Sequence record: NC_042056.1
Length of the DNA stretch: 64,000 bases
Strand: one strand, 5' to 3'
How positions within the stretch are numbered: the stretch's first letter is position 1; every line of letters begins with the position of its first letter. The translations under genes and the position numbers were made by a program. The notes under the pieces were generated by a model. It saw only the letters and a program-made list of their open reading frames with translations, made no database searches and was not told the origin of the DNA. Shown here one piece after another: positions 7,144 to 29,735 of this stretch.

Positions 7144-7152
7144 GGAGGGCAC

Positions 7153-8685: not shown

Positions 8686-8697
8686 GAGGATTTGTAA

Positions 8698-9693: not shown

Positions 9694-9696
9694 GGG

Positions 9697-10642: not shown

Positions 10643-11096
10643 ATTTCTCGTCAGGGCTCGTGGCACACTGCAAGAACGTCATACCCTCGCCGTTACCGGT
10701 AGTCGGGTCAACCGTAGAGTACGAGTAGGTTGCGTTCTTACCTTGGCTGCCGTGTAAGCGGTAATAGCGGGTGCCGGTAAACAGATCAACGCTACCGTCA
10801 ATTTTACCGAGCAAGTCTTTATACAGTTGCGGCGTTTGAACATCACCGCCCGGATAACTGGCGTGCCATGTGGCCCCGTTGTCGACCACGGTAACAGAGA
10901 AGGGCATCAATTCAAGCTTACCGAGTTGCGGTTGATACTTGACAAAAGTCTCTTTTGCAGCGCTACACTGATAGACCGTGAACTCGGTCGCTGCAACTGG
11001 AATGGTGCCAAATTGGTCCGTTGTGTTCGGTGCCATTGCACAGCCCGCGGCCAACATAATCAGCGCGACGAATAACATTTGAAGTTTACGCATCAT
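10641..11096 (-). CDS. Lipoprotein of unknown function (possibly MliC/PliC-like)
   Basis: MMRKLQMLFVALIMLAAG-C signal peptide with lipobox; two further Cys near the domain ends; start moved from the track start 11153. Confidence 0.65.
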   Translation of the reverse strand: MMRKLQMLFVALIMLAAGCAMAPNTTDQFGTIPVAATEFTVYQCSAAKETFVKYQPQLGKLELMPFSVTVVDNGATWHASYPGGDVQTPQLYKDLLGKIDGSVDLFTGTRYYRLHGSQGKNATYSYSTVDPTTGNGEGMTFLQCATSPDEK

Positions 11097-13839: not shown

Positions 13840-13880
13840 AACATTTCCTCTAATAAAGAACAACAGTCATAACAACCGTA

Positions 13881-13920
13881 AGAAAAAAAAGAAAAGCGAC
13901 CCACCCCCGAAGGAGTGGGT
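13881..13920 (-). terminator. Intrinsic terminator closing the radical SAM operon
   Basis: Minus strand ACCCACTCC-TTCG-GGGGTGGGT followed by a long T-run. Confidence 0.8.
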
Positions 13921-13925
13921 ACGAC

Positions 13926-14582
13926 TTAGGCTACACCGTTATCCGCAGCAAGCTGCTTAACTGCGGTGAAGTCTTTTTGTTCCGTGAGGATACGGATGCG
14001 TTGTTTCAACACAGACATGACCATGTGCAGGTCATTGTCACGCGTGATGATTTCCGCATAGAGGGCTTTAACGTCCTCCACCGTCCACGGCTCGATAGGC
14101 TCGTTGTTCAGCGTCATCCAGTACATCGGGTCAACCCCGGACTGCATGTAGCTTTGCATCGATTCGCGCGACTTCTCGTCAGCTTGGAACGTCTTGTCAC
14201 GGAAGGTAATGGGTGCAAACCGTTCCGCGTTATACTTGTCGTTCAGTTTCGGATAAATCGCATTGACTTCCTGATAGAGGTAGTTCTCCGTCGAGGTCAG
14301 CGCGGTACGTACGTGGTCTAAATCAATCTCCAGCACGTCAGCAATAAACTCTTTGGTTTTCTTCATCAGGAATTCAATTTCAACCGGTGACAGGTCAAAG
14401 CCTTTGAGTTTCTCGCGGGCTTTCTTGTCACTCATACCGTTAATCAGATGGTAGTGCAGTAGCAGGCAGAACCCGATACGGTTTTCCATCTGGTCTTGGT
14501 ATTCTTCCACGTAGTTACCGTAGCGGTCGATACGCGTGCCCCGTTCGAAATAACGGGCTTTTATTTCGTCGTTACTAAGCAT
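13926..14582 (-). CDS. Protein with C-terminal DUF4376-like (tail fibre-associated) domain
   Basis: ITFRDKTFQADEKSRESM..WMTLNNE..V.ALY..K.RI pattern in the C-terminal half. Confidence 0.55.
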   Translation of the reverse strand: MLSNDEIKARYFERGTRIDRYGNYVEEYQDQMENRIGFCLLLHYHLINGMSDKKAREKLKGFDLSPVEIEFLMKKTKEFIADVLEIDLDHVRTALTSTENYLYQEVNAIYPKLNDKYNAERFAPITFRDKTFQADEKSRESMQSYMQSGVDPMYWMTLNNEPIEPWTVEDVKALYAEIITRDNDLHMVMSVLKQRIRILTEQKDFTAVKQLAADNGVA

Positions 14583-15118
14583 CCGGATTCTCCTGCAATC
14601 CCAAGGTCAACCAGCAGACCGAAGTCAATGAACTGGAAATCATTTTCCAACTCTTCGCCCCAGAGCAGTTTGGCCTCTTCTGCTTCATCACCCATCTCTT
14701 CCAGCGTCTTACGTGCCACTTCGAATTCGTGGTAGAACGCATCGGTCAGGTGTGTACCGCGTAATGCACGCACAGTCACACCAGGGAAGTTCAGGGCCAG
14801 TCCCACAACGTTGGTTGGGTCTGCATCACCGGTAGAACGGCGCAGTACCTGCAACTTGTGTTTTGGGAACGCCACCACACGTTTTTCGAAACCGGGATTA
14901 CGTTTCTCGATTTCGACAACGGACTGGTGATCGTCTTCCACGCCCTGTAAAGGCAGGATGACATTCAGGCCATAACGGTTCAACAGACGAATGGTGTCAT
15001 CGTTGAAATCTTCACCCGGCACGATCGCATGGATGTTGTACAGCTTGTGTTTGCGAATGAACGCATCGACAAGGTGAACGTTACGCCGAGTAAAATTGTG
15101 AATCAGCAATGACTTCAT
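14561..15118 (-). CDS. Hypothetical protein in the radical SAM operon
   Basis: 185-aa ORF overlapping both neighbours, with GGAG SD. Confidence 0.6.
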   Translation of the reverse strand: MKSLLIHNFTRRNVHLVDAFIRKHKLYNIHAIVPGEDFNDDTIRLLNRYGLNVILPLQGVEDDHQSVVEIEKRNPGFEKRVVAFPKHKLQVLRRSTGDADPTNVVGLALNFPGVTVRALRGTHLTDAFYHEFEVARKTLEEMGDEAEEAKLLWGEELENDFQFIDFGLLVDLGIAGESGCLVTTK

Positions 15119-16427
15119 TCGAGGCTCCGAGTTCTAATTTAAGTTTATCTGCTTTCATGCGGTCACGCACGCAGCTCGCACAGTAGCACATGGATTTATC
15201 GTGCAGGTCGGCGACATTCGTGGTACCGGTTTTCTGATACCAGTATTCGGACACCAACAATTTCGCGGTCGTCCAACCACACTGGCGTCGCTCAGCATGG
15301 TACTCTTTACGCGCTTCCAGCTCGCCGTCACCGTTCTCGTAAGAAGCAGCCGCACAGCTACCGCACGAGTGTTTCATCGGGCAGCCTAAGCAGGTAGACG
15401 GGTAGTTGGTGTACTGCGTCTGAATTTCGTTCAGTAGTTTGTGACCGTCAATGTTCACAATCTCACGCCCACGCAGTTCTGCTACCGCTGAACGGGTGGT
15501 TACGGTTGACATGAAGCGGTTACAGCCGTAAATCTTACGGTCGAAGCCAAGACAGGTCATGTGGGTCAGCGTACCGCAGTAAGGACGTACACGGTCTGGG
15601 TGCAGACGGGTTGCTTCATCGTCCAGCAACTTCTGACGCCAGTCCGGGTCCCATGTCGCCATGAAGTCCAGCCCATCAGGAATGATGTGGGTCAGGATGT
15701 TACGTGGTGACTTGTGGTAGCCGTTGTCGACCCAGTAATCGATAACGTCAATCATCTGGTTTGCGATACCCAGAGCCATATCACGCGACAGAATGTCTTC
15801 GTACGTGACGTTACCGGAGATGGTACCACCGCCCGTTTCTTTAATCAGGTGAATCATGCTCTCGCCGTAACGAGGCAGGGTCTCACCGGTAAAGGTGGCT
15901 TTGATACCGAGTTCTGCAATACCGACAGATTTCAGGTATTGGTAGCCGCGCATCGCCTGCTCGTACGAGCCTTCACGCGAAGTGGTGAAGATACGATAGC
16001 GGTCGTGTACTTCTGGCAGACCATCGATGGACACACCAATCGACAGACGGTCTTTCCAGCGTTCAATGATTTCTTTGCTGATAGGACGGTCGAACAAGGT
16101 GCCGTTGGTAGAAATAGAGAATACGTACTGGCGGTTGTCGCGCGCCGCTAACTCTTCGGCTGTCTCAAAGACGGCTTTCAGAATCTTCGGCTGCATAAAC
16201 GGCTCACCCCCGATGATGTCGATAATGATTTCGGCATCTTCGATGTGACGGTCGCGGTCAAAACACGCATGAATAAAATCGACAGCGTCATCCACTTTGT
16301 TGTTGCGCGGATACTTACGTTCGTAGCAATACGAACAGTCGAGATTACAAGACAGGTTAGTTACGACCTGATACGTGAGTGTGGGGCGCTGTTTACGCGT
16401 CTGCGATGAAGATCGTTCTTCACTCAT
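15081..16427 (-). CDS. Radical SAM/SPASM peptide maturase (CXXX-repeat target type)
   Basis: CNLDCSYC (CX3CX2C), GGEP, STNG, SIDG..HDRYR; SPASM-type Cys set YCG..C..GCNRF / CLGC..CGSC..C. Confidence 0.9.
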   Translation of the reverse strand: MSEERSSSQTRKQRPTLTYQVVTNLSCNLDCSYCYERKYPRNNKVDDAVDFIHACFDRDRHIEDAEIIIDIIGGEPFMQPKILKAVFETAEELAARDNRQYVFSISTNGTLFDRPISKEIIERWKDRLSIGVSIDGLPEVHDRYRIFTTSREGSYEQAMRGYQYLKSVGIAELGIKATFTGETLPRYGESMIHLIKETGGGTISGNVTYEDILSRDMALGIANQMIDVIDYWVDNGYHKSPRNILTHIIPDGLDFMATWDPDWRQKLLDDEATRLHPDRVRPYCGTLTHMTCLGFDRKIYGCNRFMSTVTTRSAVAELRGREIVNIDGHKLLNEIQTQYTNYPSTCLGCPMKHSCGSCAAASYENGDGELEARKEYHAERRQCGWTTAKLLVSEYWYQKTGTTNVADLHDKSMCYCASCVRDRMKADKLKLELGASNEVIADSQFYSA

Positions 16428-17317
16428 TTGATTACCTCATTGCGATGTTTGCGAGCGTGGATCGTGCGATTGATGTAACGGTAGGCTTCTTGCCCAATGA
16501 CTTTCGCCAGCATGTTACAACCGCTATCGATTTCCATCTCGACATCCATCGTGTAGCCGATAGACGCATCGGAGTCCAGACGAACCAGACCGCTGCACGC
16601 GTTGCACGACTGCTCAAAGAACTTGCTGATGGAGAACCCAGTTGAGCCATTGTTCATGACATTCAGGCGTTCAATCTGGTCTTCCATTTTGTTGTAGCCG
16701 AACATGAAGTTCATCACCAAATCTTGGTTCAGAGGTTTCTTCATGCGGTTGTCCAACAGCAGCGTCATGTCTTTGAAGCCGTAGTGGTGGAGTGCGCGGT
16801 GTAAGTCCAGCAGGTCAGTGTGCCAATATTTATCAGCCAACTGCTCACGAGTCACCACGGCCCACGTATGGACGTTGTTCAGCGCAGCCATCACTTCGAA
16901 GGCTTCGAATGCACCATCTTCAACGACACGCCAGAGCGGACGTTCGCTCTTTTTGTATCCATCGAACGACACACAGATACGGTTAAACTGTTGCAGCATC
17001 GGGAGATGTTCCAGACGCATTTTCAGACCGTTCGTGTACAGCTCGTGAGTGAGATGCGGGTATCGGGCTTTGACTTCGGCCAGCAATGGCTCAATCTTGC
17101 GGGTTGCCATTAACGGCTCACCACCCGTCCAGTTCATCCCTTGTAAAGTCGGGTACTTCTCCAGTTGTTCAAACAGCGCTTCACGCTGAATTTCCCGACC
17201 AACATCTTTTGTGTCCATGTAATACGCTCCGCCGCAGAAACTACAATCCAAATTACACTTGGACGTCGTCACTATCGACAGCTCGGTAGGGGGACGTATT
17301 TGTGGTGCATCGGTCAT
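16424..17317 (-). CDS. Second radical SAM protein (short, possible Twitch-like C-terminus)
   Basis: CNLDCSFC, TGGEPL, YTNG, SFDG; C-terminal CNAC..GC. Confidence 0.85.
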   Translation of the reverse strand: MTDAPQIRPPTELSIVTTSKCNLDCSFCGGAYYMDTKDVGREIQREALFEQLEKYPTLQGMNWTGGEPLMATRKIEPLLAEVKARYPHLTHELYTNGLKMRLEHLPMLQQFNRICVSFDGYKKSERPLWRVVEDGAFEAFEVMAALNNVHTWAVVTREQLADKYWHTDLLDLHRALHHYGFKDMTLLLDNRMKKPLNQDLVMNFMFGYNKMEDQIERLNVMNNGSTGFSISKFFEQSCNACSGLVRLDSDASIGYTMDVEMEIDSGCNMLAKVIGQEAYRYINRTIHARKHRNEVIK

Positions 17318-17335
17318 TGCAGATTGCTCCAGTTT

Positions 17336-18214
17336 TTAATAGATCGCGAAAAGGGGGTCGTCCTCAAACTTCGCGCCCACATCCAGAAGGAAATCGGAGT
17401 GGTAGGCATCGAGTATTTGATTCAGAACAGCCTGACGGTCGTTAATCCGTTTAAGATCATCGAGTGTCACGCTTCGCGACTTGATGTTTGAAACTGCCTT
17501 TTCTTCGTCAGCTGTTAAGGAAACCTTCGACAGAAGGAAACTTACCAGCTTGCTCAGGTCAGCCTCGGTACCCGGTGCTTCACCGTAACGCAATTGAACC
17601 AAGAACTGCATCCACGGTTTGCGGATACGGCGACTGATTTCATGTGGATCGGTAATCGCTTCGAACTGCCCATCTACCGCATTCCAGCGAAACTTGTAGC
17701 TATACGCCAGTAAGTCAGCCAGACAATGGATACCGAGCGTTTCATAACCTAAGATGTGATGGTATTTTTCCACACCTTTATATTCTTCCGTGCCGGTCGG
17801 TACTACGGTGTACCAGAACGGATTAGAAGACGGGTAGTCCCAGCTCCACTCGCGACGAACCATGGGAATGACGTCCAAATCCGCAAACGGCGTGAAGATC
17901 ATTTCCAAATCCATCGAGTGGTTCAGGACTGCATCAGTAAAGAAATACTTACCGTCAATCAGTCGGCCACTGGCGTTCAGCTCGCCTTCATTAAACTTCA
18001 CATGCTGAACAGTGTGCTTACCGATGGAGTAGGTATTCTCTTCGGTGTACTGCTTACGTGTAATATCCCGCCCACGTACCTTAGGCCATTCGCCTGGCAG
18101 CATCGAGATAAGGCGTACTTCGTCAGCGATGTGTGCTTTCACACTGTCGTACGACGAAATGTGTAACGGGAAATTTTGCGTCGTGCGGTACGCCAAATGG
18201 AGGTCGTTCTTCAT
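17336..18214 (-). CDS. Hypothetical protein between precursor peptides and radical SAM genes
   Basis: 292-aa ORF with AAGGA SD, co-oriented in the operon. Confidence 0.65.
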   Translation of the reverse strand: MKNDLHLAYRTTQNFPLHISSYDSVKAHIADEVRLISMLPGEWPKVRGRDITRKQYTEENTYSIGKHTVQHVKFNEGELNASGRLIDGKYFFTDAVLNHSMDLEMIFTPFADLDVIPMVRREWSWDYPSSNPFWYTVVPTGTEEYKGVEKYHHILGYETLGIHCLADLLAYSYKFRWNAVDGQFEAITDPHEISRRIRKPWMQFLVQLRYGEAPGTEADLSKLVSFLLSKVSLTADEEKAVSNIKSRSVTLDDLKRINDRQAVLNQILDAYHSDFLLDVGAKFEDDPLFAIY

Positions 18215-18232
18215 GGTTTCTTTATCCTTACT

Positions 18233-18442
18233 TTATCGGTTACCCGCGCCGTAACTGCACCCACCACTGCACGACCAGCTACAGCTACCGTTGCAGTTAT
18301 AATGCGAGAGTGGAAGCCCAGCAAGGTTGTTGGTCGAACTGACCGTGCCGCGTGTGGCGATATAGTTATTGGCCTGTGCGGTCGTGATGTAGCCTTCGAC
18401 GTTCTGCACCCGATCGCGAATGTTTTTCAATGAGATTGCCAT
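18233..18442 (-). CDS. CXXX-repeat peptide 1 (short, 4 Cys)
   Basis: Leader MAISLKNIRDRVQNVE; core CNGSCSWSCSGGCS; GAGGA SD. Confidence 0.8.
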   Translation of the reverse strand: MAISLKNIRDRVQNVEGYITTAQANNYIATRGTVSSTNNLAGLPLSHYNCNGSCSWSCSGGCSYGAGNR

Positions 18443-18463
18443 AGGTCCTCACTCGATAGAGTT

Positions 18464-18856
18464 CTATCGACTGCCTGAACAGCCAGAGCATCCCGTACAA
18501 CTTGAACTACAGGAACCGGAACAGTTACCGGAGCATGTACCCGAACAACCGGAGCACCCACCCGAACACGAACCAGAACATCCTGAGCACCCACTGGTAC
18601 ACCCAGCAGTACAGCTCGACGAACATGAGGAACCGCAGCCCCCTGATGCCGAACCGGAACAGCCACCTGAACAGCTAGAGCAACCCCAGCTACAGGTTCC
18701 GCCGCAATCGTAATGAATACGTCCTTGGCCGCCGAATAAGTCGACGTTATTGGTTGCCTTATTACGGATGTAGGTTTGTACCCCACCTTCCGTTTTTAAG
18801 GAGTTCGCTTCGATCACAGCAATGCGATCCGCGATGTTTCGTAAGTTGATAGCCAT
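18464..18856 (-). CDS. CXXX-repeat peptide 2 (20 Cys)
   Basis: Leader MAINLRNIADRI; Cys/Ser/Gly CXXX/CXX core; GGGAG SD. Confidence 0.85.
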   Translation of the reverse strand: MAINLRNIADRIAVIEANSLKTEGGVQTYIRNKATNNVDLFGGQGRIHYDCGGTCSWGCSSCSGGCSGSASGGCGSSCSSSCTAGCTSGCSGCSGSCSGGCSGCSGTCSGNCSGSCSSSCTGCSGCSGSR

Positions 18857-18865
18857 TGTTTCTCC

Positions 18866-19255
18866 CTACTGTGGACCAGAGCAACCAGAGCAACCGGTGC
18901 AGCTGGAAGAACACGACCCGGCGCAACCACCGCCACACTTACCACTGCACGAAGACGCACAGGTACCTGAGCAACCTGAACAACCCGAACACCCACCGCC
19001 GCAGTTAGAAGAACAGCTACCCACGCACGTAGAAGTACAGGTTCCTGCGCAGCTGGTACAGCTTGCAGAACACCCGTTAGAACACGACCAGCTACAACTG
19101 CCGCCACAATCCAGACGGGAGGGAGACCACCCACTGAACGAGTCCGCAGCGTTGTAAGCTTTCGATGCAACCTGCCCGTCTACACGAGCCCCGGTAGCAT
19201 AGTTTGCTTCCACATTGTTAACGCGGTCGCGTATGTTTTTCATTGAAATCGCCAT
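18866..19255 (-). CDS. CXXX-repeat peptide 3 (21 Cys)
   Basis: Leader MAISMKNIRDRVNNVE; CXXX/CXX core; AAGGA SD. Confidence 0.85.
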   Translation of the reverse strand: MAISMKNIRDRVNNVEANYATGARVDGQVASKAYNAADSFSGWSPSRLDCGGSCSWSCSNGCSASCTSCAGTCTSTCVGSCSSNCGGGCSGCSGCSGTCASSCSGKCGGGCAGSCSSSCTGCSGCSGPQ

Positions 19256-19271
19256 ACGTTTCCTTTGTCAA

Positions 19272-19310
19272 TAAAAAAATGAGGACGCTGCCATAATGAC
19301 AGCACCTCAT
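19272..19310 (-). terminator. Imperfect terminator/attenuator between the tail gene and the peptide operon
   Basis: Minus strand ATGAGG-T-GCTGTC-ATTAT-GGCAGC-GT-CCTCAT followed by a T-run. Confidence 0.55.
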
Positions 19311-19320
19311 GTAATAAGTG

Positions 19321-20526
19321 TTATCGTGAACCCGCTTCGGCTTGTACGTCGTCGCGAGAAGTCAGGCTGCTGTTGACGTGTACTGCCGCCTGAACCACAC
19401 CGCCGTACTGCTTGTGGAGATAGTTCGGGTGTGGGTTATCTGCGTTAACGTGGTTCTGGAGATTCTGCGACAGGGTGTTAATGGAGTTCTGCAATCCAGC
19501 AACTTGCTGTTTCAGTGCATTCAGCTGACCAGAGAGATCCTGAATCTGCTGCTGCGTATCGGAACCGGCGGATTCCAAATCACTGATGCGCTGCTTGAGC
19601 CCATTGATGACTTGGTTCTGGTCATTGATCATCTTCTGGAGTTGTAACACCAGAGAGTTCAGGTCGGCCTGTTGTAACGCCGCCTTTTGGTAGTTCAATG
19701 CCACCGAATTCAGTTGGTCATTCCACGAACCGAGTGCACTGACCACCGCATCGATACGCGCACCGAGTGCTGTGTCCGCTGCTTTCAAATTACCGATGTC
19801 AGCGAGGACAGCGTTAATGGCAGTCTGAACCGTTTGAATCAGCGCGCGAATTTCGGTTTCAGTGAGACCGTTCGCCTGATGAATATCCAGTGCGTGAACA
19901 TTACCTTTGGCATCGATGTGCGATTGTAGCGCCGCCATCATCTGGGTTTGCATGTCAGACATGGCTGCCAGAATCTGCTGGAGCTGAACTTCGTTACCGG
20001 AGTTAATCGCATCGGTCATCAACGCGAGTTGCGTAATGATGTATTCGAAACCAAACAGGTCGCCGAGGTCTTTAAAGGCCGGAGCCGCTGCAAAGGTATC
20101 CGGGACATTACGCAGGTCAGCGAAGTCAACTTTGCGGTCTTCAAGGTTGGCATCAGCCAACGCCTGTTTAATCGCAGAGATAACCGCCGACTGTGGGCCA
20201 CCGACAACCTGTGCAAGACAGACGATATCGGTTGGGATAGCCGGGTTAGTGACGACCACACCCATACAGATTTCGCGGTTCTTAGCAAGCTTCATGTACG
20301 CCGGATGGATGTAAATCAGCTCGTAGTCGGTACCGCGTTTATAAATGGTGTTGGGTTGATTGGCAGGCCGCATACGGAACGTATCCGCAAAGAACGGCCC
20401 TGCTGGGAAAGCGAACGCACGGTTGACCTTCCCCCCACCTAACACAACCGGGACATTGACCGCGTTACTGGACGCAGCCCCTGTCAGGTCAAGTGGGTAT
20501 TGAAATAGAATATCTGGCATGGCCAA
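19321..20526 (-). CDS. Virion/tail-fibre-like protein with long coiled coil
   Basis: N-domain YPLD..GPFF..GTDYEL shared with the three upstream paralogs; heptad-rich middle; NPHPNYL fibre-like end. Confidence 0.7.
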   Translation of the reverse strand: MAMPDILFQYPLDLTGAASSNAVNVPVVLGGGKVNRAFAFPAGPFFADTFRMRPANQPNTIYKRGTDYELIYIHPAYMKLAKNREICMGVVVTNPAIPTDIVCLAQVVGGPQSAVISAIKQALADANLEDRKVDFADLRNVPDTFAAAPAFKDLGDLFGFEYIITQLALMTDAINSGNEVQLQQILAAMSDMQTQMMAALQSHIDAKGNVHALDIHQANGLTETEIRALIQTVQTAINAVLADIGNLKAADTALGARIDAVVSALGSWNDQLNSVALNYQKAALQQADLNSLVLQLQKMINDQNQVINGLKQRISDLESAGSDTQQQIQDLSGQLNALKQQVAGLQNSINTLSQNLQNHVNADNPHPNYLHKQYGGVVQAAVHVNSSLTSRDDVQAEAGSR

Positions 20527-20567: not shown

Positions 20568-23500
20568 TTACGGCAACTTAGGCATAAGATTGACCGTCAG
20601 TTTTGACGGGGTGACCGTTCCGCCGTAATAGTTGACCCCGTTGCCGATGTACAACGCGTTGTCGGCAATAAGCATGGGTATCGGTTGGCGGAAGATGACA
20701 TCTCCATGAACAATCGGGAAATAATCATCGATGGAAACACCTGCTGGCATGGCGACTTTATAAACATCAAGCACACCACCAGTGATACGCCCCGCCGCAC
20801 CCTGTACGTTCGTTATGGCACGAATGGCCACAGTAGCAGCATCGGAGATATAGAACACCGTCGCTGTGCCGTTATCCACGTTGGAGACACTGAACGCAGC
20901 GAACGCGGTGGTCTGACCCCCGTTGATACCATTAAACACGAATGTGTTTTTGACCCCCACCTCGGCAGCAAGTGTGACCTCAGCCAGTGCAGAAGAAAAC
21001 GTTGCAGAAACATCGAGGTTGGCGTTGGTACATCCAATGGTGCCGGAGCCCAAAGAGTAACCACTCTTCAATTTGATTTTCACCGTCGGGGTCGACGGGG
21101 TAATCTCCACAATCATTTTCCACGCAATCGAGATGACAGCCGACATCCCCGGAATACCCACCAAATACGCATTGTCTACATCAGAAGCCTGACCAAAGTT
21201 GGCACCCTTCATCGTGAACTTCTTGTAGTCTTTAGGCAAGGTAGCGACCGGCGCATCCCGCAGCAACTCGATAGGAACCTTGTGGCTTTGAGACGCGAAG
21301 ACCGGGCCAATCTGCGACATATCCAGATACCCATCACCGGTAGCCGCCGGAGCAGAAAGGGGTTGCTTACGCAATAGCCCCAGTCGCGAAAGCCGCGCTT
21401 CACTGTCCACATTCACATCGTGGCTGTAGACCGTGGCGGTATGCTCCGCCAACTGTTTCAACTCGCCCAAGCGTTTCACTTTTGTGAACTCAGACGACAA
21501 GATACGCTGACTGTCGGTGACTACCGTCCCGATAAACAACCGGGTATCCGTATCGGGCATTTTCTGCGTCAAAAGCTGGTATTCCGGTTTGCCGTTCACC
21601 ACCGCCGCGTGCATGTAGAACGTACGGTTTTGGTACGCACCGGGGAACAACGTCTTGAGGTTCTGGTTATACGCATCCAACGTGTAATAGTCGGAACCAA
21701 ACCGTAAGCTCTCAGACTCGGTGATGTACAGCTCCCACCCTTCTGCGGTTTTTACCCCAGCAACGATTGCAACATTCCCCGCAGGGGTGTAGTTTGTCAC
21801 CCCTGCCGCAACAAAGTCGTTCGGTGGTGCGCTTGGGCCTGCGAAATAAGACGGTGAAATCACCTGCCCGTTTGACCGCAGCATTCGCTCCCCAACAAAC
21901 GAAAGGATGGTAGCATAGTTGTAAAACGTGCTGCCGTGCACCCCCGCCTTCGTCGCCGTCAGCTTACCTCCGTTCAAACTGAAAATCAGCTCAAGGTGGT
22001 ACGCCGCGGATGACCCCACGACCTGCCGAATCATGAAGTTCGGCAAGTGCATGATGCCCGTACCGTCACCTTTCTCGTAGAAGATTGGTTGGCCCATTCT
22101 GCTGCTGTGCCCAGAATAGTTGGTATTCTGAATGAGTTGCAGGTTGCTGTACGTCGCGATGTTGGTGTATACAACGTCAGCTGTGGTCGTGACCAGCTGA
22201 ACAACCCCGTTCACGACGCTCGGGTAGATTTGGAACGTAACATTCCCTAACCGCTTATTGCCGTTATAGAGTGCGTAGTACGACATTTGTGCAATCCAAA
22301 TCGGATTGGCATCAAGGGGTCGAATCGCCCACACGGAAAAGAGGAGGTTAATCGGGTTGGCAATGCTGTCCGCCACCTCACCTGCCGGTGCTGCCGCTTT
22401 TAAGGCCGCCGTTATCTTGTTCCATGTGTCGGAGGACAACGTAAGGGTATCGGCTTTTGGTACCGCACCCACGGCCTGGTACCGCTTCACACCGGGACCG
22501 TTCCAATACGCGCCGTTTAACTTACCCGACTGGAGCGTGGATGTCGCACACCACGTCATGTCTGCCAAAGCGTAGTAATCGTCAACCGAGAAATTGCGGC
22601 GCACGTTACTCGGCCCTGCGCCCAAGTACGCGGGACCGTATGTTGTGTTTGGGTCTACCTCGACATACACCGCGCTGTTGGCGTTGGCGGGACTAAACAG
22701 ATACGCATTATTGCCCAGATACACCGGATGGGATTGACCGACAGAATACACCGAGCCAATACCGCCCGTGAACTGCCAGTTCGCCAGAGAGGTGTAACCG
22801 CTTTTGTGGTCTCCTGCGATAAAGTCGTAGAAGTCCGCGTCCATTGTCGAGTGTGCTAACCCGTTGGGGAGGGTGTCCTGAGACTGATCGTAAATAGACC
22901 ATGCACGTTGGCCAACCCCTTGGAACACCCGCATGCGGTTATCAGCATTGCCGTACGGGAACCGAACTTTCCAGCCTGCCTCTTTGAGCTTTGTCCCAGT
23001 GGCAAGATACACATCGTCCGCATCGATTTTGAATGGGAAGATATCTGCATTATCCAGCGAGACCGTCAACGTATCCATGTCAATCTGGAACGAAGTCGCC
23101 CAAGTGAAACGGCCATACGCGTCATCAGGGCTCAACAATAACAGGGTGCTCAAAATACCTACCCTGGTCATGTTCTCGCGCTGCGCTACCGCATACGTCG
23201 CGATGTTGTGTGCGATGTTGCGCAGGTTACCCCAGCGTACTTTACCGGCCTCGGTCACATAGGTGGTGCCCTGTGTCGCAGGGTCGGTCGCATCAGTGTC
23301 TGTGTTAGCGCGCAGCAACACTGAGATACCGTTGACGCTGTTCCCCCCCTTGAGAGCAGCAGGGGTGTAAACCATCTTGTCCCCACTGACTGACCCTACT
23401 AACGCATAGACACTGTACTGGGTATTGGTCAATTCCAGATGAAGAATGTAGACCTTCCCTTTATACACAATGGTTTGTTCGCGTGTCTGATCGCCGAGAT

Positions 23501-25559
23501 AGCCACTGACCGTGCCGTTCGCGTCGAACGAGGCAGGGAATTCACTCCGATACACCTGTTTGTGTTTGGTGTAGTTCAGCGTTCCTTCCAGCATGACTGT
23601 GTAGAAATATCCGTCGCTGCCTAAACAGACAAGTGCCGCATCGCCTGACGCAACCAGTGTGAGTAGCCGGACACCGGGATACTTACTCATTCCCGCTGGG
23701 TGGTATGGGAACGACGTCTGCTGCTCCCCTGCAATTGACCCATTGTTGTTTACACGGGCATAGCCGTAGTAAATGCGATCAGTGTTCGGCAATCCGTCGT
23801 TTGCATTGCGTAACAGGTAAACGATGTCCCCTTCCTGCTTGACTGCCCCCAACCCTTTCCAGCTCAGCTGTTTCGCAAAACCGGCAAAGTTCCCCACCGT
23901 TGGAATAGGCAGGAACCCACTGTTACCGTACGAGGCACCCCCAGTCGTCCACGACGGCAACAGACCGTCCAACACGTCTTTGTACGTATTAAGGCGCTGT
24001 TGTACGTTATAGCCCTGCTTTGACGTCACCACTTTGTTCGTGGTGGTATCAATCGCATCCCACAGTTGCAACAGACCTGCGTCCGTATCAGACGCCGTTG
24101 GTACGCCCGTCAGGTCGGCAAACGTGTGCGTGTGGTTTGCCAGAGCCTTATTTGCCAACACCGCACGAATGGCGTTGGTCAACGGTTTCTCAGCAGGCGC
24201 GGTGTTGTTGATGTTACCCACACCTAAATCGGCGGTCGTTAAGGTAAGGGACTGTTTCGTACCGTCATCAATGAACTTCTTCCCGTTAATGGTGTACGTG
24301 TTGTCCACGTAATCATCCAGCGTCTTTTTCAGGACGTTAACAGCATACTGCGAAATCGCGGTACCCGAAGAAATATTTGCAGACAGGTTGGTGATAGCAA
24401 ACAGCCCCGGCACTTTGTCAGTTGCCGTGGGCAGTTGCGCGTTCATGGTCAGTGGAGAAGACTGCTTCGCTGTACCGAATACCTTGATGGTGTCGGTTGG
24501 AGAAAAGTAAGCGTTCCCCGGTAAGAGTTTTACTTCGGACAGGTACAACGAGACCATGTCCGGTGTGACCAGATATGCACCGTTAAAGATGGGTGCCACT
24601 GCGCCGTTGAGCACATAAGCCGTGTTCAGCCCCGAGCCCAACTCAACCCCCACACCCCGTTCGTTACTGTCTGCATCAGCAGTGATGTTGATAGCACGGG
24701 TGGTGGTAATAAGGAACTTATCGCCTTGCAGGGTGATAACATGGCTCGAGTCGGCGGTACGGAATGTCAACGCACCGTTATTCAGCACCTTGAGGCGACC
24801 ACGCAGTTCACCAAGCACCACAGGCATCAGGGTATCGATGTGAGCTTGCTGAATGCCGTTTGCTTTCATGATAGCGACTAACTCATCCAGCGTTTTACCG
24901 AATGCCTTCGTCGAGTCTACCGCTTTGGTCAGTACCTTTAACGCCCCAATCTCATCCGCAGTGTATTGGTGTGCGTTTTTGATACGATGGTGGCTGTACA
25001 TGTTGTCGTCGAAAATCTTTTTACCGTTGGCAAAAATCAAATCGGTGACCTCGGCGTACGCCACATCCATATCGCCTGCCCGCTTAATCAAACCTTGACG
25101 GATATCATCCAGCGCTTTCACGACTTCATCGCGGAGCAGGGCTTCATCTAAGTTGGCAGGTGGGTCAATTGCAGGAACCACTGGTGCATAACGCATCAGT
25201 TCAGACCAGTCGGTGTTACGCGGGTCTTTGATGTCCTCTTTCACCAAGAACTTGCCAATCTCGGTCTGTGGTACGCGGTATTCGCGACCAATCGAATAGA
25301 TCGTGTAGTCAACAGAGGTGTCTCCGTTAATCAACATAATCCCGCCGTAGATTTGGTCTTTCATTGCGACAGCGGCTTCTTTATAATAGTAGCCGAGGTA
25401 GTAATCCAGACCCTCAATGAGCTTCACGCCTGCGCTGTTTTTCAGCTCAAGCCCGGTACGGAAGAACGGCCCCTCAGGAGGGATGACCACATTGTATTTG
25501 TTCGGATATGTGGTCGTCAGTAGCGTACCGGTAAATTTGGCTACGTTCGTGCTCGCCAT
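20568..25559 (-). CDS. Large tail-fibre-like virion protein (1663 aa)
   Basis: Shared GPFF/DY N-domain, DLGVGNINNT..KP and HTH/AT..G..L fibre motifs, long Gly/Thr/Asn-rich beta-type C-terminus. Confidence 0.7.
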   Translation of the reverse strand: MASTNVAKFTGTLLTTTYPNKYNVVIPPEGPFFRTGLELKNSAGVKLIEGLDYYLGYYYKEAAVAMKDQIYGGIMLINGDTSVDYTIYSIGREYRVPQTEIGKFLVKEDIKDPRNTDWSELMRYAPVVPAIDPPANLDEALLRDEVVKALDDIRQGLIKRAGDMDVAYAEVTDLIFANGKKIFDDNMYSHHRIKNAHQYTADEIGALKVLTKAVDSTKAFGKTLDELVAIMKANGIQQAHIDTLMPVVLGELRGRLKVLNNGALTFRTADSSHVITLQGDKFLITTTRAINITADADSNERGVGVELGSGLNTAYVLNGAVAPIFNGAYLVTPDMVSLYLSEVKLLPGNAYFSPTDTIKVFGTAKQSSPLTMNAQLPTATDKVPGLFAITNLSANISSGTAISQYAVNVLKKTLDDYVDNTYTINGKKFIDDGTKQSLTLTTADLGVGNINNTAPAEKPLTNAIRAVLANKALANHTHTFADLTGVPTASDTDAGLLQLWDAIDTTTNKVVTSKQGYNVQQRLNTYKDVLDGLLPSWTTGGASYGNSGFLPIPTVGNFAGFAKQLSWKGLGAVKQEGDIVYLLRNANDGLPNTDRIYYGYARVNNNGSIAGEQQTSFPYHPAGMSKYPGVRLLTLVASGDAALVCLGSDGYFYTVMLEGTLNYTKHKQVYRSEFPASFDANGTVSGYLGDQTREQTIVYKGKVYILHLELTNTQYSVYALVGSVSGDKMVYTPAALKGGNSVNGISVLLRANTDTDATDPATQGTTYVTEAGKVRWGNLRNIAHNIATYAVAQRENMTRVGILSTLLLLSPDDAYGRFTWATSFQIDMDTLTVSLDNADIFPFKIDADDVYLATGTKLKEAGWKVRFPYGNADNRMRVFQGVGQRAWSIYDQSQDTLPNGLAHSTMDADFYDFIAGDHKSGYTSLANWQFTGGIGSVYSVGQSHPVYLGNNAYLFSPANANSAVYVEVDPNTTYGPAYLGAGPSNVRRNFSVDDYYALADMTWCATSTLQSGKLNGAYWNGPGVKRYQAVGAVPKADTLTLSSDTWNKITAALKAAAPAGEVADSIANPINLLFSVWAIRPLDANPIWIAQMSYYALYNGNKRLGNVTFQIYPSVVNGVVQLVTTTADVVYTNIATYSNLQLIQNTNYSGHSSRMGQPIFYEKGDGTGIMHLPNFMIRQVVGSSAAYHLELIFSLNGGKLTATKAGVHGSTFYNYATILSFVGERMLRSNGQVISPSYFAGPSAPPNDFVAAGVTNYTPAGNVAIVAGVKTAEGWELYITESESLRFGSDYYTLDAYNQNLKTLFPGAYQNRTFYMHAAVVNGKPEYQLLTQKMPDTDTRLFIGTVVTDSQRILSSEFTKVKRLGELKQLAEHTATVYSHDVNVDSEARLSRLGLLRKQPLSAPAATGDGYLDMSQIGPVFASQSHKVPIELLRDAPVATLPKDYKKFTMKGANFGQASDVDNAYLVGIPGMSAVISIAWKMIVEITPSTPTVKIKLKSGYSLGSGTIGCTNANLDVSATFSSALAEVTLAAEVGVKNTFVFNGINGGQTTAFAAFSVSNVDNGTATVFYISDAATVAIRAITNVQGAAGRITGGVLDVYKVAMPAGVSIDDYFPIVHGDVIFRQPIPMLIADNALYIGNGVNYYGGTVTPSKLTVNLMPKLP

Positions 25560-25583
25560 GAAAAAACACTCCTACGTATTGAT

Positions 25584-25635
25584 AAAAGGTTACCGCCCTC
25601 TCGGGCGGTAGCTTGCGGGTATCACGCCCGCAAGC
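25584..25635 (-). terminator. Tandem hairpins / terminator
   Basis: GCTTGCGGG..CCCGCAAGC directly adjacent to TACCGCCC-TCTC-GGGCGGTA; short T-run on the minus strand. Confidence 0.55.
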
Positions 25636-25645
25636 GTGTACCCCT

Positions 25646-28600
25646 TTATACCCACTGACCGAAGTCAGTTCCATCTGTGGTGCGCTCAGCGTCCATCTTA
25701 GCCTGCAACACATTCCACAGCCTCGTGGTCATGTGTAGCGGGTTTATCCTTTTCGCTGTATAGCGGTCAGCGACAAACCACATCGCATCCGCTACGGTAT
25801 TTTCCGTTATCGTGGTGAGTAGTGTACCGCCCGCATCGTAGAGTTCGTACGTGAACTCCAGTTTCAACGGATCGGATGTGTACCCCGGAAGGTACGCCAG
25901 CTGAAGTTTCAAATCCCCACGACGGGCCGGTACCGGAACGCCGAGTTCACCGCCAAGGGATGAAGCGTAAGCCACATTTATCACCTGTCCACCAATGGCA
26001 AGCTGACGCACCGCATTGGCTTGTGTGCCTTTGACGATTTTCAGTTTGGCCACTTTGGAGGACTGCGGGAGATTGTACTCAACCAGCATGCCTGAGATAA
26101 GGAAGTTCGTGCCGTCAGAGCTGCCGGGTTTTCCGAACCAGTTGCCGTTCGTGTCGACAGAGTGAACCGACTGGAGCAGCGCATCCCGGTTAAACGCCAG
26201 TGGCAGGTAACCTGCGTGTGACGCATGGAAGGAACGACACCCCATCGGGACTAACTGGTATTCGGTATACCGCACGTCAGGTACGAACACTCCCGCAGGT
26301 AACACCACGGTCGCATTCTTCACCGACGTGTTCGGCAGCACACCCGAATCGGCATACGACTCGAACAGCGAACGAAGGTACTGGTAGGCATCTTCAACAA
26401 ACCCAATCCCGTCCAGCGGAGCCACAGACCCCAGAAGGCTACAGACACTCGTACCACCACCCAACGGTGGCAGTTCAAGTCCAACGAAGCCACCCATCAG
26501 TCCCCGGACATCAACATCGAACTGAATCTCCAGCTCATTAATGAGCAAAGAGCCATCGACGTCGTTTGGATTGCCCGCGAAGTACACGCTGAACACCGAC
26601 AGTTTCCGAAGCGTGACGTTGTACGAGTAACGCACCGCCAATCTCGGAGAGCCTGCTTTCAGTGTGGTCAAATCCATCACCCCCAAGACCGCTGACGCTT
26701 CATTCTTCCGAAGTGACGTCGTCTTGGAATACAGGATGTTGGATTCAAACGTTGGCAATGTCGTATTGACACCCGCATGGGTAGCGATAGCGTTAACGTA
26801 GCCGTAATCCGGTTCAGTCACACCATCGAGTGGCACGCGCAGATAGCGGTTTCGGTAATCCGCAGGCACACTCCCAAGGGTTGGGCTGGCAAACAACAAG
26901 GCCGGTAACGGTTGTGCGAACAGTCCGTTGGTCTGGTATTCTTCGTACACTAACCCACCTTGGAACGTCGGTGCCCCATTCGCCTTCGGGTTGGATGGGG
27001 TGAACCACCATTGCGGTGTTTGCTCCGTCGTCTCCAGCAGCATGTACGCTTTTTTCGTGGTGCTGTTGCGTGACATCTGCGCCAGTCCGTACACCGTCTC
27101 GGCTCCGGCAGTGACTTCACCGTAGAGGGCCGATGGTGAATTGAACCGCAGTTTACCAATCGGCAACATCGCCAGATTATCCGTCAGTGTCCAATCACGG
27201 GCCGCTGGGATATGTTGTTGCAAACTGGCTATATGGTCGGACGCCTCGTTGGAAATCCCGTAATCGCGCATCATCGGGAAACTGACGGTCGGGGTAGTGA
27301 TGCCGCCCGCAGGGACATCAACCACACCAATCAAGGCGGTTTCCGGTGAAACCTCATTTGTCGGTTGCGGTTCAGCACGACTGTACATGGATTGAGTTAC
27401 CATGTTCAGATACAGGAAGTGACGATTACCGAACGTTGGGGTCATGAACTCCCCAAGCTGGGTGATCGGCGTCCCGACGTCACTGCGGTAAATCGGCAGA
27501 GATTCGTCATAAACCTCAAAGGCCATCGCCGCAGCTTTCGTCGCGTCATTGCAGTCCGCACGAATCCCCAAGCAGGCAGATTGTTTTGCGGAGTCCACAT
27601 CGACTTCCAAGAAGAACGGCGAGTTGCCCGTCCCCACTTCCTGACCATCCAGATAGACCGTCACCTTACCACCCGCCACGATATACAGCCTCAGCGTTCC
27701 TGTGTACGATTTTAAGCGTAGTTTGGACAGCAGAGAGATAACGGACAGGTTACCCATCCCATTGGCACTCAAGCCGATAGGCGTCGCTTTTAAGGCGAAG
27801 TTGGGTTTGGAGGAAATGGCGGAGAAGTCAAAGTTCGCTGCGGTGTTCTTCACCGCAGGCGTCCAGTTACGCTCCATCGTGTTGTTCGGACTGAACCAGT
27901 TGAACATCGGGGTGGTTTCGAGGTTAATCGACCCACTTACCTTCCCCTCAGCCCGGTCATTCCCCCGCAGATAGAAATACTGGAGGTCTTTGACTTGAAG
28001 GATACGGCCAGATGCAACCGACCACGTTGAAGCATCGATGATGGAGAAATCTGTTGACACTCCGGTTTTCACCGACTTCAACGCATCACTAATCGCATCC
28101 AAACGATCGCTCAAGCGCTTCATGACGTTCGGTGTCACACCTTTACTGCCGGACAGACCATCATCCAAATCGGTGTACCGACCCAGACCCTCAGTGGCGT
28201 TCGTTGCCAGTGGCAAGTTTAAGGATGCAAATGTGTGCTTGTGTCCTTTATCACTCAACCCATCCATTGCGGTAGATTGGTCAGCAGAGACCGGTTTGTT
28301 GACGTCAGCAGTGTTATCTGCTTGGCTCAGACCAATATCTGTCTTGGTCATCACACGCGCACCGTCGTCCATTGGTTTGGAGTTGAGCATGGTGGTTTTC
28401 GCCACATAGCCCGACGCCTTACCTTCATACGGCTGCAACGAGTCTGGGGTCGAAGCAACACCACTGACTTCGTCGCCCACACCCGACTTTAACACCGCGG
28501 TACCTTTTACGGTGGTGGTGGCAGACGGTAGCGTCAGAGAGGCTTTAACCGGATCGGCTTTCGAACCTTTACCAGTGACTGAAATACCACCACGCCCCTG

Positions 28601-29725
28601 AACGTAAATCTTCTGGTCGTCCGGGTCGCTGGTTTGCCCGCTCTCAGTCGGTTGGTATTTCATCAGTAACGTGGTCGTGAGCAACACTTTCCCGTTCAGG
28701 GTCAGCTTGTCCATCCCGAGCGCATTACCTGATGACTCGATACGCAGGGTGTTCGTTCCCGACGTCCACTCCATGAAACGGGTAGTGGTGTCGTTGGCGT
28801 CGTAACCTGCGGCCAGAATAACCGCCCCGTTGCTTTTAATCGTAAAGGCTGTATCGGTGAAGGTGATTTCCGATGTTCCGCTTTTCGACTTGAACAACGA
28901 CCGGTTGGCAGCGAGTTGCTGAATAAAGACACCGGAGACATCTTTGCACGCCCACTTCTCGATATACTTATCGATATCGCTTTGCTGGAGCCCCAAGGCG
29001 CGGATTTCAGCCGTCAGGGTACGCAAGGTCTTCCCGTAAGCTAAGAACGTGTCTGGGGTCTTCAGGTTCGCAGGATGTGCGTTCGCTTGTGCGGACGTCG
29101 TCCCGTGGGGGTTGTGTGCCGCAATGTGTGCAGGGTAGTTAAAGGTGGTGATTTCCTTTGCTAATCCGGCAACGGTGACTTTCAGTGCCGCAAGCTTTGC
29201 CTTAACGGCATTGTTCGCGGCCTCAGAATCCAGCTCAACGTCATGCACGGCTGACGCCACGTATTTTTTATTCAGCAGGTCATGCCATGAAGTGGCAGCC
29301 GGTTTAGGGGGGAAGAACGTCGGGCGATTATCAACCTTAAACCAATCTGCATCCACAGGGTTATTCAGGTATTTAATCAGTTCATCGAGGATGTCAATGA
29401 ACGGCGAATAGAACGTATCCCCCAACGCTTGACCTACAAAGGTCAAAGACCCACCGATTTTCGGATTGATGAGTTGGATACCGCACGCAACAGGTGTGGC
29501 CACCGACTCATTCAGTTCTGGCATCTGGTAGGTTATTTCATAATCGACCCCACGGGTAAGCGGGGTCGTACTGCCGGACGCAGTCACCACTAAGCTGACT
29601 TCGAAGAACGGGCGGTTTTTCAGAATCACCACCCGGTCATCGGTCTTCTCGTTTGTGATGATGCGTTCTTCCTTGAACGCATTTGCGGGGCTAGTACCCT
29701 TCCAGTCGTAAGGATACGAAACCAT
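25646..29725 (-). CDS. Large tail-fibre-like virion protein (1359 aa)
   Basis: YPYDWKG..RPFF..GVDYEI N-domain; NPHG; KTDIGL..DNTADVNKPVS; HKH. Confidence 0.7.
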   Translation of the reverse strand: MVSYPYDWKGTSPANAFKEERIITNEKTDDRVVILKNRPFFEVSLVVTASGSTTPLTRGVDYEITYQMPELNESVATPVACGIQLINPKIGGSLTFVGQALGDTFYSPFIDILDELIKYLNNPVDADWFKVDNRPTFFPPKPAATSWHDLLNKKYVASAVHDVELDSEAANNAVKAKLAALKVTVAGLAKEITTFNYPAHIAAHNPHGTTSAQANAHPANLKTPDTFLAYGKTLRTLTAEIRALGLQQSDIDKYIEKWACKDVSGVFIQQLAANRSLFKSKSGTSEITFTDTAFTIKSNGAVILAAGYDANDTTTRFMEWTSGTNTLRIESSGNALGMDKLTLNGKVLLTTTLLMKYQPTESGQTSDPDDQKIYVQGRGGISVTGKGSKADPVKASLTLPSATTTVKGTAVLKSGVGDEVSGVASTPDSLQPYEGKASGYVAKTTMLNSKPMDDGARVMTKTDIGLSQADNTADVNKPVSADQSTAMDGLSDKGHKHTFASLNLPLATNATEGLGRYTDLDDGLSGSKGVTPNVMKRLSDRLDAISDALKSVKTGVSTDFSIIDASTWSVASGRILQVKDLQYFYLRGNDRAEGKVSGSINLETTPMFNWFSPNNTMERNWTPAVKNTAANFDFSAISSKPNFALKATPIGLSANGMGNLSVISLLSKLRLKSYTGTLRLYIVAGGKVTVYLDGQEVGTGNSPFFLEVDVDSAKQSACLGIRADCNDATKAAAMAFEVYDESLPIYRSDVGTPITQLGEFMTPTFGNRHFLYLNMVTQSMYSRAEPQPTNEVSPETALIGVVDVPAGGITTPTVSFPMMRDYGISNEASDHIASLQQHIPAARDWTLTDNLAMLPIGKLRFNSPSALYGEVTAGAETVYGLAQMSRNSTTKKAYMLLETTEQTPQWWFTPSNPKANGAPTFQGGLVYEEYQTNGLFAQPLPALLFASPTLGSVPADYRNRYLRVPLDGVTEPDYGYVNAIATHAGVNTTLPTFESNILYSKTTSLRKNEASAVLGVMDLTTLKAGSPRLAVRYSYNVTLRKLSVFSVYFAGNPNDVDGSLLINELEIQFDVDVRGLMGGFVGLELPPLGGGTSVCSLLGSVAPLDGIGFVEDAYQYLRSLFESYADSGVLPNTSVKNATVVLPAGVFVPDVRYTEYQLVPMGCRSFHASHAGYLPLAFNRDALLQSVHSVDTNGNWFGKPGSSDGTNFLISGMLVEYNLPQSSKVAKLKIVKGTQANAVRQLAIGGQVINVAYASSLGGELGVPVPARRGDLKLQLAYLPGYTSDPLKLEFTYELYDAGGTLLTTITENTVADAMWFVADRYTAKRINPLHMTTRLWNVLQAKMDAERTTDGTDFGQWV

Positions 29726-29735
29726 TTGCTTCTCC

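Follow-up and report, generated by a model that had tools for sequence, protein, structure and literature searches.

Machina, an Erwinia jumbo phage of the genus Machinavirus (NC_042056.1, 241,654 bp), carries eight co-oriented minus-strand genes at positions 13926-19255 of the 64,000-nucleotide stretch analysed here (the window; window position = record position - 124,000). Over the searched region, 13800-19400, the window matches the Machina record with 100% identity. Three of them, pepA, pepB and pepC (gp177, gp176 and gp175), encode Cys-rich proteins, two (gp172 and gp173) encode radical S-adenosylmethionine (rSAM) enzymes, and gp174, gp171 and gp170 complete a module flanked by two terminator-like hairpins. 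On sequence comparison, pepA, pepB and pepC are best read, and most economically so, as stand-alone versions of a domain that forms the end of tail fibres in other phages. We favour a model, to which we give somewhat better than an even chance, in which the module matures part of the phage adsorption apparatus by way of rSAM-stapled, Cys-rich fibre-type proteins.

pepA consists of a 49-aa N-terminal fibre-like segment followed by an 80-aa Cys/Ser/Gly core of CXXX and CXX repeats with 21 Cys. In its paralogue pepB, an N-terminal segment of 50 aa precedes a core of 80 aa that holds 20 Cys; the short paralogue pepC has the same kind of N-terminal segment and junction, but only 4 Cys. The periodicity is that of a tandem CXXX repeat: successive Cys are spaced by 4 in 15 of 20 intervals in pepA, 13 of 19 in pepB and all three in pepC, with a spacing of 3 in five intervals each of pepA and pepB and a spacing of 8 once, in pepB. 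Beyond Cys, the pepA and pepB cores are almost entirely Ser, Gly and Thr, with one Trp and a single charged residue each (Lys or Arg) and no Asp or Glu. When all six frames of the window were screened for Cys-rich sequences of this kind, pepA and pepB were the sole matches. The three genes lie 0.9-2.8 kb upstream of gp172 on the same strand. Pfam gave no match to any of the three proteins, even at E up to 10, and neither did the 18-residue repeat model TIGR04114 (cut-off 20 bits) at E up to 0.1.

We compared the pepA and pepB cores with those of seven related phages. Changes fall mostly at the third codon position, and codons with synonymous changes only outnumber those with nonsynonymous changes (152 versus 108 for pepA, 252 versus 135 for pepB). 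Because such changes dominate, the comparison indicates that the reading frames are real and that the genes are under selection. Every Cys column is invariant (21/21 in pepA, 20/20 in pepB), as against 13 of 59 and 13 of 60 non-Cys core columns, respectively, a sign that the Cys are strongly selected for. Alignments of repeats tend to pair Cys with Cys; despite this caveat, the number and spacing of the Cys are plainly conserved. The pepC of CR5 and Kwan (L005 and L006, 3963-4172) keeps two of its four Cys and has a different C-terminal tail, and pepC may be losing its modified part in some lineages.

The N-terminal segment and the core are found together elsewhere, at the ends of larger proteins. 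All three Cys-rich proteins belong to phrog_6085 (Table 1), and in fused proteins the phrog_6085 match is C-terminal, behind tail-fibre PHROG domains (L022, L023, L009), as in L022, where it accompanies the tail-fibre family phrog_2631 (E 3e-32). A Cys-rich C-terminus is present on recognized tail-fibre proteins in L009, L022, L023, L013 and L008; other phrog_6085 fusions involve a GDSL esterase (L041) and an F5/8 type C domain (L086). In the fused fibres, the PHROG match starts at profile positions 17-35, within what would be the 'leader' of a pepB-type protein. The junction between segment and core, which we scanned with a short degenerate pattern, reads ATNNVDLFGGQGRIHYDCGGTCSWGC in Machina pepB and ATNADQLGGQAGSYYRCSDCSWTC in a Deferribacter prophage fibre, the two being alike as they stand. 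When 1.84 billion representative proteins were searched by phmmer with pepB as query, 58 matched, and in 32 of these (proteins of 60-370 aa) the best stretch ends no more than 10 residues from the C-terminus. Most relatives of pepB are longer proteins that carry the match at this end. One match of the pepB search, P0197, is 2688 aa long and contains 20 matched stretches.

The relatives of gp172 occupy the same kind of setting. Outside the jumbo-phage clade, the next relatives (31-39% identity) are found in prophages and phage contigs directly 3' of tail-fibre genes, not in ordinary bacterial gene clusters. Members of the clade are present in phages or prophages of P2-like, lambda-like, T7-like and T4-like kinds, where they always adjoin tail-fibre or baseplate genes. 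In a P2-like prophage of Campylobacter pinnipediorum (L009), baseplate genes W, J and I are followed, in this order, by genes for a fibre, a 250-aa protein, two rSAM enzymes, a DUF1353 protein and the sheath, and the last ~40 residues of the 384-aa fibre (PF12571, E 2e-40) are a Cys/Gly/Ser CXXX repeat. In a lambda-like prophage of Deferribacter abyssi, GpJ is followed by a 302-aa fibre-like protein, whose C-terminal ~100 aa are CXXX repeats, then by a 250-aa gp174-like protein and two rSAM genes. Two contigs with a T7-type fibre show the fibre gene, an uncalled Cys-rich open reading frame (ORF) of 76-79 aa, a gp174-like gene and two rSAM genes; the Cys-rich ORF (L011 3021-3251, L012 3017-3256) begins 2 nt past the fibre stop codon, in another frame. 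A T4-like contig encodes a 568-aa fibre-like protein with the Cys-rich domain at its end, and baseplate wedge genes lie upstream in L040 and L053.

Loci for a wider survey were chosen solely by similarity to gp172. A scan of IMG/VR, seeded with rSAM patterns only, yielded 193 relatives; 80 of them were retained and, with the loci gathered before, brought the total to 89. By the criterion that matched pepA and pepB alone in the window, a same-strand Cys-rich CXXX ORF lies beside the enzyme in 82 of the 89.

The surveyed loci fall into two types. Type I comprises 19 loci with 30-100% identity to gp172 and usually, with three exceptions, combines at least one Cys-rich protein and a gp174-like protein with two rSAM enzymes, one short and one large; the short, gp173-type enzyme is nearly always partnered by the large one. 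Type II enzymes are 24-29% identical to gp172, and most of these loci consist of one Cys-rich protein and one large rSAM enzyme, likewise adjoining baseplate and fibre genes. Three of five Type II enzymes tested pass the cut-off of TIGR04115 (L024, L053 and L063, 434-474 bits; the others score 293.6 and 341.4), whereas Type I enzymes reach 113-157 bits against this model, about as much as against the PapB model, and appear from these scores to be a separate clade. In the otherwise unrelated locus L053, a phrog_2163 protein, the family of Machina gp178 (E 7e-52), lies beside the pair of rSAM enzyme and Cys-rich protein. The TIGR04114 cut-off is passed by the Cys-rich ORF of L012 (26 bits) and the fibre of L013 (20.7 bits).

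Several loci show further variation in the enzymes and their partners. L022 has a single 686-aa rSAM ORF (5134-7194) in place of the short and large enzymes, which may be a fusion of the two. In the T4-like contig L013 (2083-2798 and 3583-5001), the short rSAM enzyme is 472 aa long, with a long extra C-terminal part, and two upstream rSAM-like fragments of 71 and 157 aa are possibly a broken extra copy. L064 (943-10251) contains three rSAM ORFs and a further, rSAM-like ORF without the cluster motif; of its two very large Cys-rich proteins, one has 52 Cys in 551 aa and the other 78 Cys in 421 aa. The Cys-rich protein of L085 (2618-3733) has Hint (intein-type) matches at about residues 181-228 (Hom_end_hint, E 1e-9), inside or just past its Cys repeats, the rich window starting at about residue 131. 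In P0156 (634 aa), a gp172 relative is fused to a cytidylyltransferase domain, PF02348.

The larger Machina enzyme, gp172, has a CxxxCxxC motif at residues 27-34 and a C-terminal Cys-rich region of the type that holds SPASM auxiliary clusters. Across an alignment of 30 sequences, C27, C31 and C34 of the motif are invariant, as are C284, C302, C346, C349, C355, C358 and C383 in the C-terminal region, with C292 nearly so. In NCBIfam it scores highest against TIGR04115 (126.6 bits, cut-off 350) and, at nearly the same level, PapB-family model NF047865 (125 bits, cut-off 340); TIGR03906 is also among the matches, at 65.5 bits (cut-off 453). With scores below the cut-offs of both leading models, the gp172 clade appears to be a sister of TIGR04115 and not a member of it. 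The original prediction, drawn up from the sequence of the window and a list of its ORFs, had named TIGR04114 and TIGR04115, which proved right in kind, as these are a Cys-rich target repeat and a CXXX-repeat-target maturase. The best match in the PDB is the SCIFF maturase CteB, a thioether-forming enzyme (5WGG, E 2e-12), with an alignment that runs from CteB residue 104 and gp172 residue 24. Because the rSAM motif of gp172 already starts at residue 27, and the CteB alignment at residue 104, gp172 has no N-terminal extension of the size of a recognition element (RRE) for peptides made on the ribosome and modified after translation (RiPPs).

The shorter enzyme, gp173, has a CxxxCxxC motif at residues 21-28 and a GGE motif in an alignment of 11 orthologues. 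Three C-terminal Cys (238, 241 and 267) are conserved in the same alignment, which suggests that gp173 carries one auxiliary cluster and is twitch-like. Its NCBIfam matches (QueE, MoaA, NrdG and viperin-type models) lie far under their cut-offs and cover the generic rSAM core only, as do its PDB matches, which are weak and include SkfB and a lipid-modifying rSAM enzyme.

The third component of the module, gp174, gave no Pfam or NCBIfam match, and a homologue search found it only on contigs of jumbo-phage size. Profile comparison with hhalign connected the gp174 family to the 250-aa protein that takes its place in the Deferribacter prophage (probability 97%) and, weakly, to the 250-aa protein of the Campylobacter prophage (19%), which jackhmmer later included. 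By jackhmmer, a gp174-like ORF is present in 18 loci, and every one of the nineteen Type I loci except L013 has such an ORF. The AlphaFold2 model of gp174 is confident (predicted local distance difference test, pLDDT, 89). A Foldseek comparison of the model with the PDB and BFVD found only gp174's own orthologue in BFVD and a best PDB match at E 0.19, giving no support to the idea that gp174 is an RRE. With no recognition domain in gp172 itself, keeping the substrate in place probably falls in part to gp174, a candidate scaffold for the rSAM enzymes or a candidate partner that binds their substrate.

Among the surveyed loci, gp171 and gp170 occur only in the eight jumbo-phage loci. The AlphaFold2 model of gp171 (pLDDT 88) is an alpha/beta partial barrel, and its best Foldseek overlay is the rSAM core of SkfB (6EFN, TMq 0.59, E 2e-3), followed by SuiB and QueE. 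gp171 has no cluster-binding Cys motif, and hhalign found nothing significant between gp171 and rSAM alignments. We had considered gp171 as a flavodoxin-like reductant, but the fold search gave weak similarity to rSAM cores instead; as the profile comparison is not significant, gp171 is no flavodoxin and no clear case of a degenerate rSAM enzyme either. gp170 has weak PHROG matches to tail-fibre and tail proteins and is possibly a fibre-assembly factor.

The whole block is conserved in SPN3US-like jumbo phages. Phage records with the large rSAM enzyme number 67, and those with the pepB N-terminal segment number 62; the two sets cover the same SPN3US-like phages, whose hosts include Erwinia, Salmonella, Escherichia, Cronobacter and Proteus. 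pepA, pepB and pepC occur in the same order in SPN3US, phiEaH2, CR5, Kwan and Caitlin, and pepA orthologues are found in all SPN3US-like genera examined. The genes 3' of the module vary between genera. In these five records, the pepA and pepB orthologues are unannotated or overlain by ORFs in the wrong frame or on the opposite strand (Table 1); correct calls are confined to Machina-like records.

Mass spectrometry of the SPN3US virion assigned the homologues of Machina gp178-gp181 (SPN3US gp167-gp170) to the tail (PMC10052503 Table S2). Among these, gp167, the homologue of gp178, was classed as a tail protein with 880 peptide-spectrum matches, and gp168-170 form 'paralog family C', also of the tail (PMC10052503). 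SPN3US gp161-gp163, the homologues of Machina gp170-gp172, were present in trace amounts and classed as non-virion, which is what assembly factors should show; gp164 and gp165 went undetected (PMC10052503).

Table 1. Features of the Machina module and its surroundings (window positions), and pepA/pepB regions mis-annotated in other jumbo phages (positions within the locus named).
Feature	Position	Strand	Match or description
Terminator-like hairpin with T tract, upstream module edge	19284..19306	-	10-pair stem, 3-nt loop, T-rich tail; between gp178 and pepA
pepA (gp177), 129 aa	18866..19255	-	phrog_6085, E 1e-48
pepB (gp176), 130 aa	18464..18856	-	phrog_6085, E 1e-50
pepC (gp175), 69 aa	18233..18442	-	phrog_6085, E 4e-29
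gp174, 292 aa, third component of the module	17336..18214	-	phrog_8030
gp173, 297 aa, short rSAM enzyme	16424..17317	-	Pfam Radical_SAM, E 2e-11
gp172, 448 aa, SPASM-type rSAM enzyme	15081..16427	-	Pfam Radical_SAM, E 5e-15
gp171, 185 aa, accessory	14561..15118	-	phrog_7988
gp170, 218 aa	13926..14582	-	Pfam DUF4376, E 7e-10
Intrinsic-terminator-like hairpin, downstream module edge	13899..13920	-	9-pair stem, TTCG loop, then long T tract
gp178, 401 aa, coiled-coil tail protein directly upstream	19321..20526	-	phrog_2163, E 1.5e-110
gp179, gp180, gp181 (1663, 1359, 1011 aa), large tail-fibre/baseplate paralogues upstream	20568..32771	-	
Mis-annotated pepA/pepB region, SPN3US	L002 7414-8221		SPN3US_0166, wrong-frame ORF over pepB
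Mis-annotated pepA/pepB region, phiEaH2	L004 3135-3928		G173_gp087/088
Mis-annotated pepA/pepB region, CR5	L005 3145-3950		CR5_157
Mis-annotated pepA/pepB region, Kwan	L006 3127-3953		Kwan gp183/184
Mis-annotated pepA/pepB region, Caitlin	L007 3107-3894		Caitlin gp175/176

In Machina itself, much of the layout given by the original prediction stands: the ORF list has all eight minus-strand genes with the order and content described, a hairpin with a UUCG loop and a T tract closes the module, and the four upstream genes called tail-fibre-like are gp178-gp181, with homologues in the SPN3US tail. The tight coupling by overlapping start and stop codons is true of the last three junctions, which overlap by 4, 38 and 22 nt, and not of the first four, where gaps of 9, 21, 18 and 18 nt separate the genes. 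Because the gaps and overlaps are small and hairpins lie at both edges, the eight genes look like one transcription unit within the tail block. The sequence AGGA precedes the pepA ATG by a few bases. A scan for sigma-70 promoters found fewer sites than in shuffled controls, such a scan being uninformative for a phage with its own RNA polymerases. gp179, gp180 and gp181 gave no Pfam match.

Elsewhere in the window, Machina gp167 (12397-13107, minus strand) is a DUF1353 protein (E 2e-16) annotated as a 'tail assembly chaperone'. A DUF1353 gene (L009 7068-7433) lies directly 3' of the rSAM pair in the Campylobacter P2-like prophage, and in CR5 a gene annotated as 'tail assembly chaperone' lies 3' of the module; the association of such genes with the rSAM module may be a recurring one. 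At the start of the window (1-10800, plus strand), about 13 consecutive genes (gp151-gp163), most encoding 276-331 aa and three 457-510 aa, are annotated as virion structural proteins in L001. This run may be the counterpart of a paralogue family that has been reported from the head of SPN3US.

Gene content, conservation, co-occurrence, domain fusions and setting are observed directly; that the enzymes act on the Cys-rich proteins, by which chemistry they do so, and that the product forms part of the virion is what we infer. In this model, pepA, pepB and pepC would each supply an N-terminal fibre-like segment and a CXXX-repeat domain, encoded separately just after gp178, their likely fibre partner. 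Late in infection, in the reducing cytoplasm, the SPASM-type gp172 and the twitch-type gp173 would act on the Cys repeats, with gp174 probably holding the substrate for gp172. By analogy with CteB, PapB and TIGR04115, the nearest enzymes, the product would be covalently crosslinked at many places through its Cys, most likely by thioethers. The resulting rod or knob, stapled and very stable, would be incorporated into the tail fibres or attached to them. Extra help with assembly may come from gp171 and gp170, which are confined to jumbo phages. Disulfides cannot form in a reducing cytoplasm; staples made by Fe-S enzymes would, as we see their rationale, let the phage rigidify a fibre part there. 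More tentatively, and with rather less than an even chance in our estimation, many phages of myo-, sipho- and podovirus type may harden the distal ends of their receptor-binding fibres with rSAM staples, the domain being split off in SPN3US-like jumbo phages as three conserved paralogues that perhaps form a small three-chain fibre on gp178. Such staples would represent an unrecognized class of enzyme-dependent virion protein modification.

Several points weigh against our model. Crosslinking of the Cys-rich proteins is argued by analogy. The Cys-X3-Asp/Glu substrate motif of the PapB family does not occur in the 80-aa pepA and pepB cores, which contain neither Asp nor Glu and hence no acceptor sites of the PapB type. 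Family searches of all eight proteins bore out the Radical_SAM assignments of gp172 and gp173 and the DUF4376 assignment of gp170 in the original prediction; the Pfam SPASM model is missing from the matches listed for gp172 with E values up to 0.1, and gp172 and the Cys-rich peptides score under the cut-offs of the curated families TIGR04115 and TIGR04114. The fold of gp174 yields no functional clue, its role being guessed from position and conservation. Virion analyses have so far detected none of the Cys-rich proteins. Their absence from the SPN3US tables carries no weight, because they are unannotated there and the pepA and pepB cores, with at most one Lys or Arg each, have almost no tryptic sites.

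If the Cys-rich proteins are matured without entering the virion, then they might serve as transient chaperones or templates for the folding of gp178-gp181 and stay outside the finished particle. A tail-fibre block, that of the P2-like prophage for one, is the usual site of fibre chaperones, genes for DUF4376 and DUF1353 proteins are close by, and the SPN3US homologues of gp170-gp172 are non-virion, all of which would suit such a role. In many relatives, however, the domain is covalently part of the fibre and would travel along with it unless cleaved, and heavy covalent stapling would be costly for a transient factor. We consider this explanation unlikely.

The Cys could instead bind metal, with the domain holding Zn, Fe or an Fe-S cluster that lines the fibre, and the rSAM enzymes modifying something else or a few residues only. 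The density of Cys and their regular spacing with small residues do resemble metal-binding proteins, and invariant Cys fit metal ligands as well as they fit crosslink donors. What this leaves hard to explain is the near-universal pairing with rSAM/SPASM enzymes related to thioether maturases, and we rate it a trifle less probable than a transient assembly role; metal binding and crosslinking are not fully mutually exclusive.

More doubtful still is a classical RiPP, in which the N-terminal 50 aa would be a cleaved leader and the crosslinked core would be freed at lysis as an antibacterial or signalling effector. The locus does resemble a RiPP cluster in that its small Cys-rich ORFs adjoin an rSAM/SPASM enzyme that matches peptide maturases best, and in Machina an endolysin gene lies just downstream. 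This neighbour is not kept across genera, and an 80-aa core with at least 20 Cys is unlike known RiPP cores. Searches of the eight proteins against Pfam, NCBIfam and PHROGs found no peptidase or transporter family, the module has no immunity gene, and no RRE was found by fold search of the gp174 and gp171 models, the former matching no known fold, or as an N-terminal extension of gp172. Because a matching fibre stretch precedes the Cys-rich domain in relatives, the N-terminal part of the pep proteins does not appear to be a usual RiPP leader; it corresponds to an internal stretch of tail fibre, and the whole domain is fused to large fibre proteins in many relatives. We consider an exported RiPP unlikely, since no protease, exporter or RRE was found and the domain forms part of structural proteins in other phages. 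The Cys-rich proteins are thus no ordinary leader-plus-core precursors, and of the two purposes that the original prediction offered, the virion appendage is favoured, as phrog_6085 ends fibres beside homologous rSAM pairs, and the effector released at lysis is disfavoured. That the enzymes act on a nucleotide, cofactor or lipid beside incidental Cys-rich neighbours, as the weak gp173 matches described above might suggest, is very improbable given that these matches are to the generic core, that Cys-rich ORFs co-occur at 82 of 89 loci and that Type II relatives pass the TIGR04115 cut-off.

The stapled fibre end that we favour has partial parallels in known systems. TIGR04115 and TIGR04114, a family pair defined in silico (NCBIfam), likewise combine an rSAM/SPASM enzyme with an adjacent CXXX-repeat protein, and TIGR04115 tops the gp172 matches; the Machina-type clade differs in adding a second, short rSAM enzyme and a gp174-like protein. 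What is known is thus the pairing of enzyme and target as a curated in-silico family pair, and what is new is the two-enzyme clade, the partner protein and the biological setting. CteB and PapB, the latter the maturase of the ranthipeptide freyrasin, both form thioethers and share with gp172 the CxxxCxxC motif and the Cys-rich C-terminal auxiliary-cluster region, but CteB has an N-terminal recognition domain for which gp172 has no room. Their substrates are short peptides with few Cys-X3-Asp/Glu or Cys/Thr sites, whereas the Machina substrates would be proteins of 69-130 aa, two of them with ~20 Cys. QhpD, an rSAM/SPASM enzyme, puts several Cys-derived crosslinks into QhpC, the small subunit of quinohemoprotein amine dehydrogenase. 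The concept of a crosslinked small protein serving as a structural part of a larger complex, and not as a secreted natural product, is the same, and TIGR03906 is among the gp172 matches, though far under its cut-off. In Machina, the target has another sequence and the larger complex would be the virion.

On the side of phage structure, T4-type fibre tips, adhesins and fibre chaperones share with the module a position after the fibre genes, and in relatives the Cys-rich domain is itself a fibre C-terminus. The module proteins gave no sequence or fold match to known fibre tips or chaperones, and to our knowledge no such tip or chaperone relies on radical SAM chemistry. In the HK97 capsid 'chainmail', self-catalysed isopeptide crosslinks harden the capsid. 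There, too, covalent crosslinks made in the cell harden a part of the virion, but in Machina dedicated Fe-S enzymes would act on a tail component. Full-text literature searching found no paper on this cluster or on the chemistry or biology of TIGR04114/04115, and none linking rSAM/SPASM enzymes to phage tail fibres; a match to 'thioether' in one paper on tail fibres traced to a reference on another matter.

The range of bacteria to which a phage can attach is set by its tail fibres, which are thought to fold with the help of chaperones only. Standard annotation and tryptic proteomics systematically miss Cys-rich proteins of the kind described here. If our model is true, the orphan CXXX-repeat radical SAM family would gain a biological function, and the puzzling rSAM genes beside tail genes in many phage genomes would be explained. 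The modified core would be a natural protein of ~80 residues bearing some 20 enzyme-made staples. Enzyme-made covalent crosslinks in a fibre end would be new to the field and add a new layer to virion biology.

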